Shown here: piece by piece, positions 21,443 through 29,010 of the stretch
Position numbering within the stretch: the first letter of the stretch is position 1
Layout: every line of letters starts with the position of its first letter
Notes under the pieces: model-generated
Database searches by the model: none
The model's input: the letters and a program-made list of their open reading frames with translations, nothing else
Told to the model about the DNA's origin: nothing
Position numbers and translations under genes: made by a program
Assembly (NCBI RefSeq): GCF_000143415.4
Contig: NW_003314344.1
Coordinates: 504,336 to 568,335 of the forward strand
Origin: Selaginella moellendorffii
Taxonomy: Eukaryota; Plantae; Lycopodiophyta
Reading direction: 5' to 3'
DNA: 64,000 nt

Positions 21443-22453
21443 AAGATTTATGTAATAAATTGTTGAAAAATAAAAAGAAAAAGAAAAAAAAAAAACCATG
21501 TTTGTATACACATTTGTGTTTTGGTTGACTTCGCTTGTGTTTTGGGCGAGAACTCTCATCCAAGGTTCCAAGATGTTGCAGCGATTTCTTGGCCAGGTAT
21601 CACTAGCAAATCCACACACTGCATGGATCTTTGCGGTGACACTCTACATTTCCATGGTCTTCGTCTTGCTGGCTTTTGGGATTCACCACTTGAAGAAGAA
21701 CTTCTCTCTCGTGGCTGGACTTATTCTCACTGTTGTTAGCTTGGTTATGCTGGAACTCAACTCCCCTCCTTCCTGATTTCATGATCTTGATCTTAAATTC
21801 TCCCCAAAATCAATCAAACAATCCAGTTTTTCTTGCTTCAATGTCAAAGGTATTGTTCGTACTCCTGGCACTTCGTGATTTTAAATATTTATTTATTTTT
21901 ATAAAGATTTTTGGTATGTACAGCGACGGTGCCACTGAGATATTGTTTGAAAATATCAAATCAGCTTCGTGACTTGTATAGTACCTTGGCAAGGAATTTC
22001 AAAAAAAAGAATAAATTCTAAAGCTTTTGAGCAAAGATTAAAAGTCTTGATCTTGCCTCCTGGCAGCATTGATATTATTTCTTTCCTTTTCATTTCTTTC
22101 TTGCTGTGTCGATGTTCATCTCCATTTTTTCTCGCTGATAGATATCCAACCCATCTCTCATTCGCCACAGTGCTAGTTTTGTCCATGTTTGTTAGGATCG
22201 CTCTCCAGGATGTCAGCAGATCCACTGTAGATCGCTGGAGTTGTTTTTGGAGTGGAGGAATATAGGATTTGCGTGATTGGAACTTTGGAGCTTGGCCATG
22301 GGTTCCTGTAGAATCTGAGCTTTTGGGTCTTTGGCTTCACAAGAATCCATATCACCATTTCATTTCAAATCTTTGCAGTTCTCTCTTTATTTTTTTTCTT
22401 TATTTTTTTTTTTTGCTTGCTTGCCTGCTTGCTTCCTTTTTGGATTCTCGAGA

Positions 22454-22876
22454 ATGGGAAGAACGAAGGCCAGGTCCAAGAAATCCATTGAGGACGATGC
22501 CACCAACAATTTGGGGATGGATAACAGGGCAGCAGAAGCTCCAAGGAAGAGGGGCAGGCCAAAGAAAGTGATTCAACACGAAAGCGAAGAAGATCAACAA
22601 GAGAAAGAAGAGAAGCATGAAGAACAGGAGGGAGTTCTAGATGATCACTTTGATCCAAAGCCATTCTTTGAAGACAGTGGCAGCAGCAAAGATGTGGTTA
22701 ATGCCCACAAGCAAGAACAAAACGAAGAAGCTCCAGCTCGCTTTCTTCCAAGAAAAAGGGGGAGGCCTCCCAAAGCCAAAGCAATAGCAGTAGCTCCAGA
22801 GCAGCAAGCCAAGAAGAAAGGATACAGTCGACGCAAGAGTGAGCCACACAGAGCCGCTGGCTTCGCTGCCAAATGA
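22454..22876 (+). CDS. Small nuclear protein with two AT-hooks and an acidic spacer (140 aa, single exon)
   Basis: ATG 22454 (MGRTKARSKK). Two PRKRGRP(K/P)K AT-hooks flank an E-rich stretch. The C-terminal SRRKSEPHRAA resembles the RRKxxPxRA motif of small plant basic proteins. Confidence 0.72.
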   Translation: MGRTKARSKKSIEDDATNNLGMDNRAAEAPRKRGRPKKVIQHESEEDQQEKEEKHEEQEGVLDDHFDPKPFFEDSGSSKDVVNAHKQEQNEEAPARFLPRKRGRPPKAKAIAVAPEQQAKKKGYSRRKSEPHRAAGFAAK

Positions 22877-23181
22877 ATCGACGATCGATCGATGCGATCG
22901 ACAAATCAATGGAAAAATCCCGTTTTTGGATCCAAAATCCCAAAATCTTGCTTATTGTTTCAAACATACTTGTCGTATCGTGAGCTGCTTCCAATCCATC
23001 CAACCGAAAGTTTTCGATCAATCACTGTTACCTTTCGTTCAAACTAAGAAGCAAACAAAATAATTTTGATAAAAAAAAATTCGTGGCCGATTCCTCCATT
23101 TTAAAGCCGTGCAAGAAAAGGACTTCCTTTCGCAGTTAAAATATTGGTCTTGTCTTGACTTCCAGACGATGCCAATGATAA

Positions 23182-24975
23182 ATGAGCTCCTCGCCATTCC
23201 AATCTCCAAAGCTTTCGATCACCAGCGATGCCGATCTTCACAGTGCCCTCGATCAGCTCCAACTCTCGAGCGACTGCTGCAACCTCTACGAGGGGATCGT
23301 CAAGTACTGCGGCAAAAGCAAGAATCTCTCGGCTGGAAGACGCGCGCACTCTCTTCTCCAACAAAGCTCGCTTCGATCGGACAGATACCTCGCTAATCTC
23401 CTCGTGGAAATGTATGGGAAGTGTGGGAATCTGGACGAGGCTCGGCGGGTTTTTGACACCGTCGCGGTGCCGAATGTTTTCTCCTGGACTCTCCTGTTCG
23501 TTGTATATGCCCAGAACGGGCATTTGCGTAAAGCTCGACAGATTTTTGAAGCGATGCCGGAGAAGGATGTTGCTGCCTGGAACGCGATGATGAACCTCTA
23601 TGTTGAGAATCAGGACTTTGATTCTGCTAAAGAAATCTTTGATAGAATGAAAGCCAGAGATGTGTTCTCGTGGACTGCGATGATCACTGCATACTCGCAC
23701 AGTGGGGATTTGGAGAGCGCAAAAGCTTGTTTCGATCGAATGAAGCGTCGTAACTCCGTTACATGGAATGCTATGTTAGCTGCCTACATACGAAATGGCC
23801 ATACGGTAGAAGCCGAGTCTTTTTTCCGAAAGATTCCGCGGCCTGATGCTGTTTCGTGGAACTCAATCATATCCGCAGTTGCCAAATGCGGGGATTTGCG
23901 GCGAGCAAGACAACTTTTCGATCAGTCACCGGAGAAAAACGTCGTAACTTACAACACGATGATCACCAGCTTTGTTCAGACCAATCGTGTCGATCTCGCA
24001 AAGAATTTCTTCGATCGGATGGAAGAGAAAGACTCGGTTTCGTGGAACGCGATGATAACCGGGTATGCCCAAAGCGGCCATCTCGACAAAGCCCGAGAGA
24101 TGTTTGATCGAATGCCCGACAGAGATAGAGATCCGGCGTCCTGGAACTCGATGATAAGCGGATACGCTCTTGAAGGACGCCTCGAGGATGCGAAGTTCCT
24201 GTTTGATTCCATGGCCGGGAAGAGAAACTTGGTGTCCTGGAACGCTCTCATCGCTGGCTACGGGCAGAATGGCTATGGAAAAGAAGCCATCAATCTCTTC
24301 AAGAAAATGGTGCTGGAGTTTCGATCGGAGCTTCCAAACAAGGTGACTTGCATCAGTGTTTTGGATGCCTGCGCGAGCAGCCTCTCGCTGAGCGATGGCC
24401 GAGCTATGCACGCCAGGATCTTCCTCTACGGCGTCCAGTCCGAGACAGTGGTGGGAAACTCGCTCATCAACATGTATGGGAAGTGTGGCTTGCTGGATCA
24501 AGCCGCGAGAATTCTCATCACGATGCCTCACGCCAATTCGATCTCCTGGAACACCTTGATCGGATCGTATGCTCAGCTCGGCCGCGCGGCGATCGCAATC
24601 CAGCTCCTTCCGCTCATGATCTGCGAGGGATTCCAGCCCTGCCAGGTGACTTTCTCGGGGGTTCTCTCGGCTTGCGGCCATGGAGGGCTGTGGAGCAGAG
24701 CGCGCGAGTTCTTCGTGTCGATGGTGGGCGATTTTGGGGTAGCACCCATCGCCGGGCACTACGCGTGCGTGATCGATCTTCTGGGCCGCTCCGGGCTGCT
24801 GATCGAGGCTCAGGATTTGCTCCAATCCACGCCGCAGGACGAGATCTCGTGCATGTCGATCGTGGGCGCATCGAGGCTGCACGGCGATTGCGGGATTGGA
24901 TCCCGGGCGGCGCTGCGCGCGTCGCAAATCGATCCACAGAGCTCCGCGCCCTACGTGTTCTTAAGCTCTTTTTAA
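23182..24975 (+). CDS. PLS-class PPR protein (tandem 31-aa SS motifs, ends in E region), intronless
   Basis: 597-aa ORF. MYGKCG, repeated (D/N)VVSWNAMI..Y..NG....A...FD.M, TFSGVLSACGHGGL, HYACVIDLLGRSG. Ends at PYVFLSS*. Confidence 0.93.
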   Translation: MSSSPFQSPKLSITSDADLHSALDQLQLSSDCCNLYEGIVKYCGKSKNLSAGRRAHSLLQQSSLRSDRYLANLLVEMYGKCGNLDEARRVFDTVAVPNVFSWTLLFVVYAQNGHLRKARQIFEAMPEKDVAAWNAMMNLYVENQDFDSAKEIFDRMKARDVFSWTAMITAYSHSGDLESAKACFDRMKRRNSVTWNAMLAAYIRNGHTVEAESFFRKIPRPDAVSWNSIISAVAKCGDLRRARQLFDQSPEKNVVTYNTMITSFVQTNRVDLAKNFFDRMEEKDSVSWNAMITGYAQSGHLDKAREMFDRMPDRDRDPASWNSMISGYALEGRLEDAKFLFDSMAGKRNLVSWNALIAGYGQNGYGKEAINLFKKMVLEFRSELPNKVTCISVLDACASSLSLSDGRAMHARIFLYGVQSETVVGNSLINMYGKCGLLDQAARILITMPHANSISWNTLIGSYAQLGRAAIAIQLLPLMICEGFQPCQVTFSGVLSACGHGGLWSRAREFFVSMVGDFGVAPIAGHYACVIDLLGRSGLLIEAQDLLQSTPQDEISCMSIVGASRLHGDCGIGSRAALRASQIDPQSSAPYVFLSSF

Positions 24976-25138
24976 ACTGGGTGGAATATGCTCCATCGAC
25001 GGAGGGCGCCATGTTAGGGCACGCCCGTTCGCGACTCGAGCGATCGGAGCTGCTGATGGGCGATCGCAATTCTAGCTGGGATTAGCTTGCTGTGACGATC
25101 GATCGGTAGAACACACTGAGAAACTTGGATTTGGCGCA

Positions 25139-25516
25139 ATGGGGCGCCGGAAATCAAATGTGATCCTGCGAGCTCTGTCGTGCTTGAAGCACCAGGCTGG
25201 GAGCAGCGTTCGCTCGCTATCCAAATTGCTAGGATGTCGGGCGCCGCGGGGCAGCATCAAGAAGCTCGCCAGGAAGAAGAGGATTTCTAGGGGCAATTCG
25301 GTGGGATTCAAGCTCGCATCCAGATCGATAAGCAGTAGCAAGCACTTGGAATCGAAGAGGAAGAAGAAGAAGAAGAACGATCACCACCGCAGAAGAAAGC
25401 GATCGAGGAAGAGCGAGCAGCATGATCACAAGCTCAAGCGGCGAAGGAGGCGACGACGAAGAAGACGAAGAAAACAAAAGGGAAGAGGCTCGCGCGGGAA
25501 ATGGGGATTGCTGTGA
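25139..25516 (+). CDS. Putative linker-histone H1-derived protamine-like basic protein (125 aa)
   Basis: N-terminal ILRALSCLKHQAGSSVRSLSKLL...IKKLARKKRI...GFKL matches the H1 globular pattern I..AI..LKE..GSS..AI.K.I...LK.LV..G.L....SFKL. The tail has KRKKKKK, HHRRRKRSRK and 11 consecutive Arg in mixed codons. Confidence 0.68.
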   Translation: MGRRKSNVILRALSCLKHQAGSSVRSLSKLLGCRAPRGSIKKLARKKRISRGNSVGFKLASRSISSSKHLESKRKKKKKNDHHRRRKRSRKSEQHDHKLKRRRRRRRRRRRKQKGRGSRGKWGLL

Positions 25517-25715
25517 CATAGATTTTCCCTTCTATAAGTTCTCTCCTTTTGTCCCCTTTGGTGCCCAGCTATGGCGGCCATTTTGACCAAACAATGGCGT
25601 TTATTTAGGGTTTATCGCGTCATCACGTGGAGGAGAGAAGACGCGTTCCCGCCGCGCTGCCATGATGCTCGTTCCAGAGTGATGCGATCGCGGCAATCTC
25701 CAAGAGGCCGGCGCC

Positions 25716-27700
25716 ATGAATCGAGGCGCGATTGGCAGCGTCGTCCTCGCCATCGCCTTGCTCGCCCTCGTCGCGAATGTATCGCACGCCGTGGAGGAGG
25801 ATCGGTCGTCGGTGAGTGTCAGGGCTAGGGTAGCGCCGGATGAGAAGGATCAGGGATGGAGCGGCTCGAGAACAGCGGCATCGAGGGTTTCTGTGGCGAC
25901 TGTGGCGATTCTCACGCTTGGAATGGCTGCCGCTACTGGTCTCGGTGCCGTGCCGTTCTTCTTCGTGGAGTTGCAAGCAAAATGGGCCGGACTGTGCAAC
26001 GGGATCGCGTCTGGAGTGATGCTTGCCGCGAGCTTCGATTTAATCCAGGAAGGCCAGAGGTTTGGAGGAGGAAATTGGGTGGTGGCGGGCATTCTTTCGG
26101 GTGGACTCTTCATTCTCTACAGCCAAAAGGTTCGTTCTCCTCTAGAACACTGGATTTATTTTTCTAGAACACTGTCATCCTATTCTTTGCTTTCTTTCTC
26201 GCAGGTTTTGGAGAGGTTTGGGGACGTGAAGCTCATGGATGTCAAGGGTGCTGATGCAAGGAAAATGCTCCTTGTGATTGGTATCATGACGCTTCACTCG
26301 TTTGGAGAAGGATCTGGAGTGGGAGTTTCCTTTGCCGGACCCAAGGGACTCTCGCAAGGAATCACTGTGACGCTGGCGATTGCTGTGCACAACATTCCCG
26401 AGGGATTGGCAGTGAGTATGGTCCTTGCGTCGCGAGGGGTCTCGGCTCGCAATGCGATGCTTTGGAGTACCTTTACTTCTTTGCCACAGGTAATGCTTGA
26501 TCTTTTGGTTGGTTTGCCAAACCTTTGACACGTTATCTTCTCTCTGGATACAGCCATTGGTAGCAGTACCAGCTTTTATCTGTGCGGAGGCGTTCCAAAA
26601 ATTTCTACCTCTCTGCATGGGCTTCGCTGCGGGATGCATGATCTGGATGGTCCTGGCCGAAGTTCTTCCCGACAGTTTTAAGGTGACAGAGCAAACTCTA
26701 GAGACTCTTAGGCACGTCTAACGTTGGCTGCTATCCAGGATGCCGATGCTTCCGAAGTTGCCTCCGCGGCAACCGTCTCGATAGCTTTCATGGAGATTCT
26801 AAGCACAGTCATGGAAAGCGGAGCCAGGTATAACTACATCGTTTTTCACCAAAACCAGGGCGGCTTGACAGCTCTAATGTTTCCAGATGGAACAACACTG
26901 GCTCTGCTCTTCTCTGGTCACTGCTCTTCGGACTGGGGCCTTTCATCGGCGGCCTCGCTCTAGTTTCGCTCGTCGGCTCGATCAGATTACCTTACTCATT
27001 CTTTGGCTCAGTGGGATCCGGGATAGCACTCGTCCTGGCTCTCTGGAGGCCGTCACAGCTCTGGCTCTCGGGAAAGATGGACAGACTAGTTCTCTCGGGG
27101 CTCTTCTTCCTGGGAACTTGTCTATGGAGGCTGGCTCACCTGTGGGAAAGCAGAAGACCCCGGAAGGCCGAAGTGGAAGTTTTCATCACCAAGCCAAAGC
27201 AAGCCAGCAGCCTGGCTTCCGGGGCGATTCTAGCAGCAGGGACAATGGGCTTCCACGCTTTTGCGGAAGGCTTAGCTCTGGGTGTGGCGGCCAACAAAGC
27301 TTACGGCCTTGGAACTCATATGCTCTTGCCGGTTTGTCTCCACGGACTGCCGCGAGGGGCCGCTGTAGCGAGCACCATCTATGGAGCTACTGGAAGCTGG
27401 CAGCAGGCATTGGTTCTAGCAACAGTGACGGGATTTGCGAGTCCGGTGGGTGCGATTGTGGCGATTCTGGGAGGATTGAGCTACAGCGGACTAGATTTTT
27501 GGATGGTGGTGGCGTGTGGAAGCTTGGTTCCAGCGTTTGGTCGCCAGATTTTGGTGAGAGCTGCTGGAAGGAGGGGCGCGAGCAGCGTGGTGATGGGACT
27601 GGTGACTGGCTTTGGATTTGCGAGCGCGCTTCTTACCAGCACTCGAATGGTTTGTTTGTATACGCCTTACTGTAGCTCCGCTCCAGAAGCTGTGACTTAA
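25716..27700 (+). CDS. ZIP-family metal (zinc) transporter with duplicated ZIP domain, 5 exons
   Basis: Signal peptide, then ATGLGAVPFF, TLHSFGEGSGVGVSF, IAVHNIPEGLAVS and a second-half FHAFAEGLALGV and LHGLPRGAAVAS. Exons ~25716-26129, 26205-26489, 26553-26682, 26740-26827, 26887-27700. Confidence 0.92.
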
Positions 27701-27869
27701 CAGCAATTTAAAGGAGCCTTTAAAACTTACCTAGGGTTCTTGGGTCTTAGGAAGAAGTGTGAGATGCCGCGGGCGAGGCGATCGGAGGCGCTCGTCCTTG
27801 CGCTGCTTCTGTCTTGCATTCCATTATGTAGCTCAAGTCGATCCGGCAGGAGCTGGAGGACGTGCTTGG

Positions 27870-29010
27870 ATTCTGCGAGAGATTTCCTTCCCTTTCGGGG
27901 AAAATGTAAGCGATCGGTTCGTTCTTTCTTGGAGAATGCCGCTCAGTGCGTCTTGCTCTTGCAGATTTCTCGCGAAATGGCGAGGATTTCGGCGTTTCTT
28001 AGGATCCAGCAGGAGGAAGAGGCGAAGATTGTGGCGATTCCCGTCCTTGTTGCGGCGTTGAAGGCGTGTGGCAGCTCCGGCGACGTGGATTTCGCGAAGA
28101 AAATCCATGGCGATGCAGAGGAGAGCGGGCACGATTTCTACGTTGCAAACACGCTGGTGAGCTTGTATGGATAGTGTGTGGCAACTTGGTGGAAGCTGAG
28201 AGAGTTTTTTGCGGGGATGGTGGTTTCTTGGGCGGCACTGATGCTGGAAAACGGGGAAGAGGCACTGGCTTTACAGGCACCACTGTCATGGATGAGAGCA
28301 GAGAAGTGTGGCTCCAAATGACAGGACCTTTGTTGCTGCTCTCAAGGCATAGCAGGCAAGGAAGAAGGCAGCAAAGAGTTGGAAGATGGTTCGTGAAAAC
28401 ACGGACGCTGGAGAAAGGCATGGATCTCCATTCTCAAGCTTCAAGCTAGATATATTCGTGGCCAGCTCGGTGATCGACATGTACGCTATCGTTCGGTATG
28501 GGTGCCCGGACAAGTTTAAGCAGCATGACCTGGTTTCGTTGGTGCTGGGGTACTTGGAAAACGGCCAGCCAGAGCTTGGTTACACAGATTGTGGAAGTTT
28601 ATTGGACGCTCAGGGGCTCTTCAACCACTTGCCAGTCCATAATCTGGCACTCTGGAACACGCTGATACTCGGGTATGCTGAGAACGTAGTGGACGAGAAG
28701 ATCGCCATCCCTCTCTCGACCAGCTCAGCATGGCTGCAAGCCGAGAGAGAACCGACGCGAAAGTGATCCCGTCGTCACGCATTTGATCGAAGAGCTCCAT
28801 CGCGAGCTTGTAGTTCCCCTGGCAGCTGTATCCCCCAATCAAAGCATTCGAGACTTCCAGCCGGAGTCGAAAGCATGCCGAGCTTCCACCATGCCTCCAC
28901 ACTTCCCATACGTGTCCACCAGCGCGGTTCGTAAAACGCAACCGTGGATCCATCTCACGGCCTCCAAAGCCAACAGATTCCCACAAGCCTCGAGTGCGGC
29001 CTTGAAGCTC
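27870..29010 (+). pseudogene. Chimeric PPR pseudogene, copy 2: + strand fragment fused tail-to-tail to a - strand PPR fragment (~28710-29010)
   Basis: + strand: VAALKACGSSGDVDFAKKIHG, DIFVASSVIDMYA, LWNTLILGYAEN. - strand: NALIGGYSCQGNYKLAMELFDQMRDDGITFASVLS. Multiple frameshifts. Confidence 0.85.

Follow-up and report, generated by a model that had tools for sequence, protein, structure and literature searches.

A short basic reading frame between a PPR and a ZIP gene of Selaginella moellendorffii, tentatively an orphan frame rather than a linker-histone-derived protamine

Here we examine a 125-codon reading frame of the lycophyte Selaginella moellendorffii, which an earlier note had proposed to encode the globular domain of linker histone H1 fused to a poly-arginine tail and, by extension, a protamine-like protein of sperm chromatin. 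We lean, tentatively, towards the view that it is a chance, or an untranslated and lineage-restricted, orphan reading frame and not a linker-histone-derived protamine, and we consider a chance frame and a real gene about as likely as each other. The H1 reading is weakly supported by the comparisons reported below: the likeness to H1 is most likely that of a 27-residue helix-GSS-helix motif, of a kind common to several helix-turn-helix folds, and a protamine or sperm role for the product is unsupported. Of the earlier interpretation, the H1 likeness of those 27 N-terminal residues and the Arg-rich tail alone hold up. The frame serves as a worked example of how such a motif, followed by a basic tail derived from repeats, can mimic the layout of H1.

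All coordinates are those of the forward strand of the window, that is, the whole 64-kb stretch of DNA that was analysed. The frame occupies positions 25139-25516, opens with an ATG in good context (G at -3, G at +4) and closes with a TGA at 25514-25516. As the earlier note had described, and with the motifs quoted there exactly present, it is situated between a PPR gene (23182-24975, 597 aa) and a ZIP gene (PF02535; 25716-27700), within a spacer that measures 740 nt from the PPR stop codon to the ZIP ATG; the frame starts 164 nt past the former and ends 200 nt before the latter, and all three reading frames share the same strand. The ZIP gene consists of five exons (25716-26127, 26203-26485, 26550-26680, 26737-26823 and 26883-27700), whose GT..AG joints are confirmed in RNA contigs of four runs, and its product is a 576-aa Zip protein. 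In assembly GCA_000143415.2 the frame matches GL377648.1:529474-529851 exactly, a locus that already carries the annotation of a hypothetical predicted protein (P0001; NCBI, UniRef, nr and EukProt), so that the expectation that annotation would miss it proved wrong for the reference haplotype. A further copy occurs only as the allele of the second haplotype (hapB), on the allelic scaffold GL377647.1 (locus L002), which was located through the PPR protein. That allele is intact at L002:7976-8356 and encodes 126 aa, with one extra Lys; this product is absent from the protein collection searched, and no gene is called there between PPR and ZIP, though a RefSeq-type model is indexed alongside.

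Several properties of the locus support a chance origin. The distances of only 164 nt and 200 nt to the neighbouring genes leave hardly any room for a promoter and a terminator, the other haplotype carries no gene call, the tail is made of simple repeats, and RNA depth over the frame follows that of the PPR gene. Under the chance reading, one frame of a stop-poor, period-3, purine-rich tract of GAA/CGA/AGA repeats would read as Lys and Arg; together with some 200 nt of unique sequence that opens with an ATG in favourable context, the tract would yield a frame of 125 codons within the 740-bp spacer. The RNA that covers it would then represent a 3' extension of, or read-through from, the PPR transcript, and/or the leader of the ZIP transcript, rather than an mRNA of its own, and the product, if translated at all, would be a young nucleic-acid-binding protein of very basic character, located probably in the nucleus or nucleolus.

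The composition of the predicted protein is extreme, with 51 Lys and Arg among 125 residues against four Asp and Glu, and with 29 Arg, five Ala and one Pro. The last 59 residues hold 33 Lys and Arg, and the tail is the most basic among 460 stop-to-stop segments of the window. It sits on imperfect period-3 purine repeats, namely (GAA)8 and two copies of GACGAAGAA. The first of these, a microsatellite at 25354-25377 that reads as a Lys run, is the sole GAA-type trinucleotide run of at least four units, in any phase or on either strand, in the 64-kb window, and its length varies, with one additional GAA on the second haplotype. The second, an imperfect repeat at 25455-25472, overlaps out of phase with a run of 11 Arg codons at 25439-25471 (residues 101-111; CGG CGA AGG AGG CGA CGA CGA AGA AGA CGA AGA), which is identical on both haplotypes and whose DNA reads GGDDEEDEE in the next frame. 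The earlier note had quoted this run and its mixed codons correctly and had taken the mixture to indicate protein-level selection. That argument fails: a decayed GAA/GAC repeat gives the same mix, and the mixed codons do not prove selection on the protein because the second repeat overlaps the run out of phase.

The length of the frame is by itself within chance expectation, with an ATG frame of at least 125 codons arising in the 740-nt spacer in 4.7% of mononucleotide shuffles and in 14% of first-order Markov simulations. In being short, confined to a single exon, without homologs, tailed by trinucleotide repeats and squeezed between genes, and in having an ab initio gene model on one haplotype only, it resembles orphan or de novo frames that have formed on simple-sequence repeats in UTRs and intergenic DNA. 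It is unlike them in two respects: its unique N-terminal half fits a known DNA-binding motif unusually well, and the two haplotypes encode it without any amino-acid substitution.

Some or all of the spacer is present in 20 rows, which come from nine or more studies and of which not one is recorded as RNA. Splicing of the ZIP introns identifies the four runs that we examined (X1, X3, X6 and X12, from four studies) as RNA. Their contigs jointly span the whole interval from PPR through the frame to ZIP, and RNA over the frame occurs in every one. In X3 a single contig (23262-25796) comprises PPR, the frame and the start of ZIP, and in X1 a single contig runs from 25030 through the frame into spliced ZIP. 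Depth in X6 was 9.3 over the frame, 9.9 over PPR and 81.6 over ZIP; the corresponding values in X12 were 9.6, 4-7 and 41.5, and in X3 the contig holding the frame, joined to PPR, had a depth of 53.6 versus 618 for ZIP. Depth over the frame thereby follows PPR in three of the four runs and lies 4- to 12-fold under ZIP, whether the contig that holds the frame is separate or joined to PPR. Transcription of the spacer is evident, probably widespread and similar in level to that of PPR, in runs whose tissues are coded; neither a separate mRNA for the frame, nor its strand, nor specificity to the male gametophyte is apparent in these four. We infer, tentatively, that the frame is untranslated and that the RNA covering it belongs to the neighbouring genes.

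Three contig ends near the frame are unreliable as transcript ends. The start of an X6 contig at 25092 is the base next after haplotype SNPs at 25088 and 25091 and represents an assembly-bubble break; the ends at 25112 and 25579 coincide with no known variant of hapA or hapB and may mark gaps in coverage where contig depth is low. One X1 contig lacks the T at 25302, a 1-nt deletion that would cut the frame to 63 aa. All listed variants of X1 but one (22988 C>T) are of hapA or hapB type, and the 25302 deletion occurs in neither haplotype; we set it aside as evidence against the frame, as a possible assembly error or rare allele. Just past the stop codon, about 180 nt before the ZIP ATG, the motif TATAAG (25533-25538) lies within a T-rich stretch. 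It could be the core promoter of ZIP, which would put the frame outside the main ZIP mRNA.

A different account, possible though we regard it with some doubt, is that the frame is a genuine gene, restricted to this lineage, which encodes a small protein of chromatin or one that binds nucleic acid; it would be expressed weakly in the sporophyte and have no special role in sperm. The N-terminal ~60 residues would then be a shortened and strongly diverged winged helix of the linker-histone globular domain (GH1) type that has kept helix 1, GSS and helix 2, has lost about 7-10 residues before helix 3 and has a shortened wing, and the H1 tail would have been replaced by a repeat-derived tail of Lys, Arg and His. 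What recommends this account is, first, a layout like that of linker histones H1/H5 (PF00538; plant H1, GH1-HMGA and GH1-Myb), with a very short N-terminus, a stretch of ~60 residues, the first 27 of which follow the pattern of helix 1, GSS and helix 2, and a long basic tail.

The motif itself is measurable. Our own GH1 profile was obtained from a search seeded with three short GH1 domains and built only from the 120 PF00538 database proteins that were returned; this domain-only profile was scored against the N-terminal 70 residues with all filters off. It gave 13.4 bits, with residues 6-32 (25154-25234) aligned, in canonical register, to helix 1, GSS and helix 2. Two of 20,000 composition-preserving shuffles of the N-terminal 70 residues reached that score, as did none of 20,000 for residues 1-33 alone, and the frame had the top GH1-profile score among 448 segments of the window. 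An alignment to GH1 by hhalign returned a probability of 32% and a P of 4.8e-4, its global form requiring gaps of four and nine residues, and a Smith-Waterman alignment to a plant GH1 domain (P0232) was colinear over the whole domain (P 0.005).

Against descent from H1 stands the failure of the curated profile and of every search for relatives. The Pfam Linker_histone profile (PF00538) does not match at E ≤ 10, either with the whole protein or with seven sub-ranges of it. No histone was present among phmmer matches to PDB sequences at E ≤ 10, in a set that holds 27 H1/H5 sequences, and BLASTP against a PDB-verified GH5 domain gave no match at E ≤ 100. An exhaustive phmmer search of 1.84 billion representatives with residues 1-70 found no histone, returning only the frame itself and a chance match to a repeat protein, and a word-indexed search of 5.8 billion clustered proteins returned the frame alone. 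The chance match (P0002, E 5e-5), the sole non-self one, is a T9SS repeat protein of Bacteroidota type (2024 aa; CHU_C, SprB) whose 20-residue repeat matches residues 14-33 many times; we dismissed a relationship, the score being chance inflated by repetition. No homolog was found at E ≤ 1e-3 in any organism, S. moellendorffii's own H1 genes included.

Nor does the likeness extend through the domain. Residues 34-66 (25238-25336), proposed as helix 3 and wing (IKKLARKK ... GFKL), carry no independent GH1 signal: compared with the C-terminal half of GH1 and with a plant GH1 profile they gave no signal (shuffle P about 0.15-0.2), and animal-rich and plant profiles failed alike. Of the winged-helix pattern that the earlier note had traced over residues ~8-60, the resemblance of residues 6-32 is therefore measurable and that of residues 34-66 is not. 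When recalculated library-wide, the match to our own GH1 profile has an E that ranges from about 0.1 by theory to 2.5 by empirical estimate, no better than that of the rival family discussed below. The tail, too, differs from that of H1. The earlier note had described a Lys/Ala/Pro-rich tail replaced by basic clusters, and the clusters are there, in a tail rich in Lys, Arg, His and Ser, but a Lys/Ala/Pro-rich tail of H1 type is absent from the protein, as is the Ala/Pro/Thr-rich composition of S/TPKK type. The earlier note had itself let the H1 origin hang on a profile match and on conservation of the frame; with no match of PF00538 at E ≤ 10 and no relative in any other organism in the protein collections searched, the H1 origin nearly fails on that note's own terms.

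Structure prediction divides on this point. Single-sequence AlphaFold2 modelling of the whole protein gave a pLDDT of 54-68 over the N-terminal 60 residues, with three low-confidence helices, and modelling of residues 1-70 alone gave a mean pLDDT of 60.7 and two long helices; neither model contains a winged helix or a wing, and neither has a confident fold. Foldseek found no match to these models in the PDB, and a wide structural search (VIA) with them returned coiled coils only (best Z 3.8). The AlphaFold2 models were set aside as evidence, being too uncertain.

The ESM Atlas, by comparison, places both the whole protein (score 0.89) and residues 1-66 (0.83) with PF00538 clusters, with 176-178 shared features. 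The top family matches are all PF00538, the best cluster (0.89) being named 'protamine-like', and the Atlas ESMFold model of residues 1-66 reaches a TM of 0.79-0.82 to GH1 models, as against 0.73-0.80 to helix-turn-helix domains of IclR type. The score and the coherence of the family mean little here, because a plainly spurious antisense frame used as a control obtained 0.87 with a coherent family; that control had 102 shared features only, and the shared-feature count is informative. By the Atlas's own calibration the count corresponds to about six to one for true kinship. By the Atlas's own rule the matches are leads, which may point to GH1 kinship.

The comparison of the two haplotypes is consistent with constraint on the frame, as a real gene would predict, and we give it little weight. 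Between the haplotypes the frame has one synonymous change (25237 T>C, Cys33), one in-frame GAA and no nonsynonymous change; the flanking spacer, 362 nt in all, has eight substitutions, its non-triplet indels amount to 18 nt (Fisher p 0.018 for the frame against its flanks), and the ZIP introns diverge by 1.7-3.6%. The corresponding pN/pS is 0 for the frame (no nonsynonymous and one synonymous change), 0.16 for PPR and 0.23 for ZIP. The signal is discounted because divergence is patchy along the locus: about 25% of 378-nt windows in the non-genic interval 21443-23181 also show at most one change.

Taken against the chance reading, then, are the succession of a GH1-like part and the window's most basic tail, which is the layout of H1, the rarity in shuffles of a GH1 motif in canonical register, the ESM lead, the intact allele and the good start context; RNA in each of the four runs also fits a real gene. 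Set against a real gene are the silent curated profile, the lack of GH1 signal in residues 34-66, of an AlphaFold2 fold and of homologs, a library-wide E unremarkable for the GH1 match, the patchiness of low divergence in the locus and the scant room for a promoter and terminator.

The N-terminus has a second claimant. Across Pfam, the only family reported for it is HTH_SB (PF25787), the helix-turn-helix of Sleeping Beauty transposase, at 13.3-13.8 bits and a library-wide E of 0.05-0.08, with a cut-off of 43 bits that is far from reached. The alignment places residues 17-46 (25187-25276) on profile positions 18-45 of 53 and is stable across five sub-ranges; it overlaps the GSS segment and the GH1-like stretch, covers helix 2 and the turn, and continues across the proposed helix 3 with no long gap. 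Since GH1 and HTH_SB cannot both reflect descent, one or both of these ~13-bit matches must be due to chance, and chance matches of such size thus do occur for this sequence. One might accordingly read the N-terminus as a relic or domesticated helix-turn-helix of a Tc1/mariner-type transposase (a paired-like PAI subdomain) joined to a basic tail derived from repeats, and residues 17-46 do show the succession helix, GSS, helix, P-R-x-S, helix found in Sleeping Beauty and Tc1-mariner elements. We think this improbable: 5-8% of queries would show a library-wide E of 0.05-0.08 by chance, the score is well below threshold, the exhaustive phmmer search returned no transposase, the ESM Atlas prefers GH1, and the frame, unlike such elements, has no DDE domain or other transposase body, with no terminal inverted repeats, direct repeats or extra copies around it.

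There remains the reading of the earlier note, that the male gametophyte produces from this frame an H1-derived sperm nuclear basic protein of protamine-like type, which would compact sperm chromatin directly or after a cleavage that frees its Arg-rich tail, as in Marchantia. To our knowledge, no gene has been assigned to the condensation of sperm chromatin in lycophytes or ferns. The precursors of the Marchantia protamines have a recognisable H1 domain. The precedent is drawn from passages of PMC10858212, according to which the protamines of Marchantia arise when H1 histones specific to the male germ line are cleaved (D'Ippolito et al. 2019, cited there), and which refer to cited works for their male-germ specificity and their presence in sperm; the same passages mention protamine-type proteins in the sperm of Chara, Marchantia and Marsilea.

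The frame shares with the Marchantia protamines and with animal protamine-like (PL) proteins, in concept, an H1-type globular part followed by an Arg-rich and possibly releasable segment. By composition, the Arg-rich segment of DNA-condensing type that is expected of a protamine-like protein is present (29 Arg among 125 residues, 11 of them consecutive), the best Atlas cluster bears the name 'protamine-like', and the fast evolution of such proteins could explain the absence of homologs. All the points against H1 descent nevertheless apply here too. The Marchantia precursors, moreover, differ from the frame in their recognisable H1 domain, and the RNA over the frame points to low and widespread transcription, its depth following PPR in runs of coded tissues, unlike that of a sperm-restricted gene; no paper in the literature collection searched links Selaginella to protamines. 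This reading is accordingly very unlikely. In its strongest form, it would make the frame a truncated and rapidly evolving derivative of H1 that has a poly-Arg tail and packages lycophyte sperm chromatin, its own promoter masked by PPR read-through in bulk RNA, a version to which we likewise attach slight credence.

Were it true, vascular plants would have in this frame a counterpart to the H1-derived protamines of Marchantia; confirmation would extend the route from H1 to protamine from liverworts to vascular plants and make the question of sperm chromatin condensation in these plants testable. At present so weak a candidate is useful as something that can be checked at little cost against tissue-resolved Selaginella expression data and sperm proteomes.

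The neighbouring genes are of some interest in themselves. The PPR reading frame stops inside an E1 motif (...PYVFLSSF*), and its homologs align in frame past the stop codon to about 25005-25038, over a decayed E1 motif; in full-length homologs 10-20 more codons align in frame, followed by a median of 84 further residues. Since homologs align through the stop, the PPR gene has lost its E/DYW end, on both haplotypes, and yet evolves under constraint, as judged from its pN/pS, and the first 60 nt of the spacer are decayed coding sequence. That the 125-codon frame itself might be decayed E/DYW coding sequence was considered and rejected, the best match among 119 queries having an E of 0.03 and not being colinear. 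Upstream of the PPR gene, at 22454-22876, lies another short annotated orphan of 140 aa, without a Pfam match and annotated on the reference haplotype only, an ab initio model of the sort that the 125-aa frame also represents; an RNA contig ends near it, at 23052.

Divergence between the haplotypes varies considerably along this part of the window. At synonymous sites it amounts to 5.4% in PPR versus 1.4% in the adjacent ZIP gene, a difference of about fourfold, and non-genic stretches of about 500 nt occur without any change between the haplotypes, for example 21677-22155. Downstream of ZIP, positions 27701-28800 diverge sharply from the second haplotype (L002:10541 onward), with about 10% substitutions and 164 gap columns in about 1 kb. 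A PPR-like reading frame lies on the forward strand within this diverged region, at about 27740-28766, and the alignment suggests a structural difference between the haplotypes downstream of ZIP.
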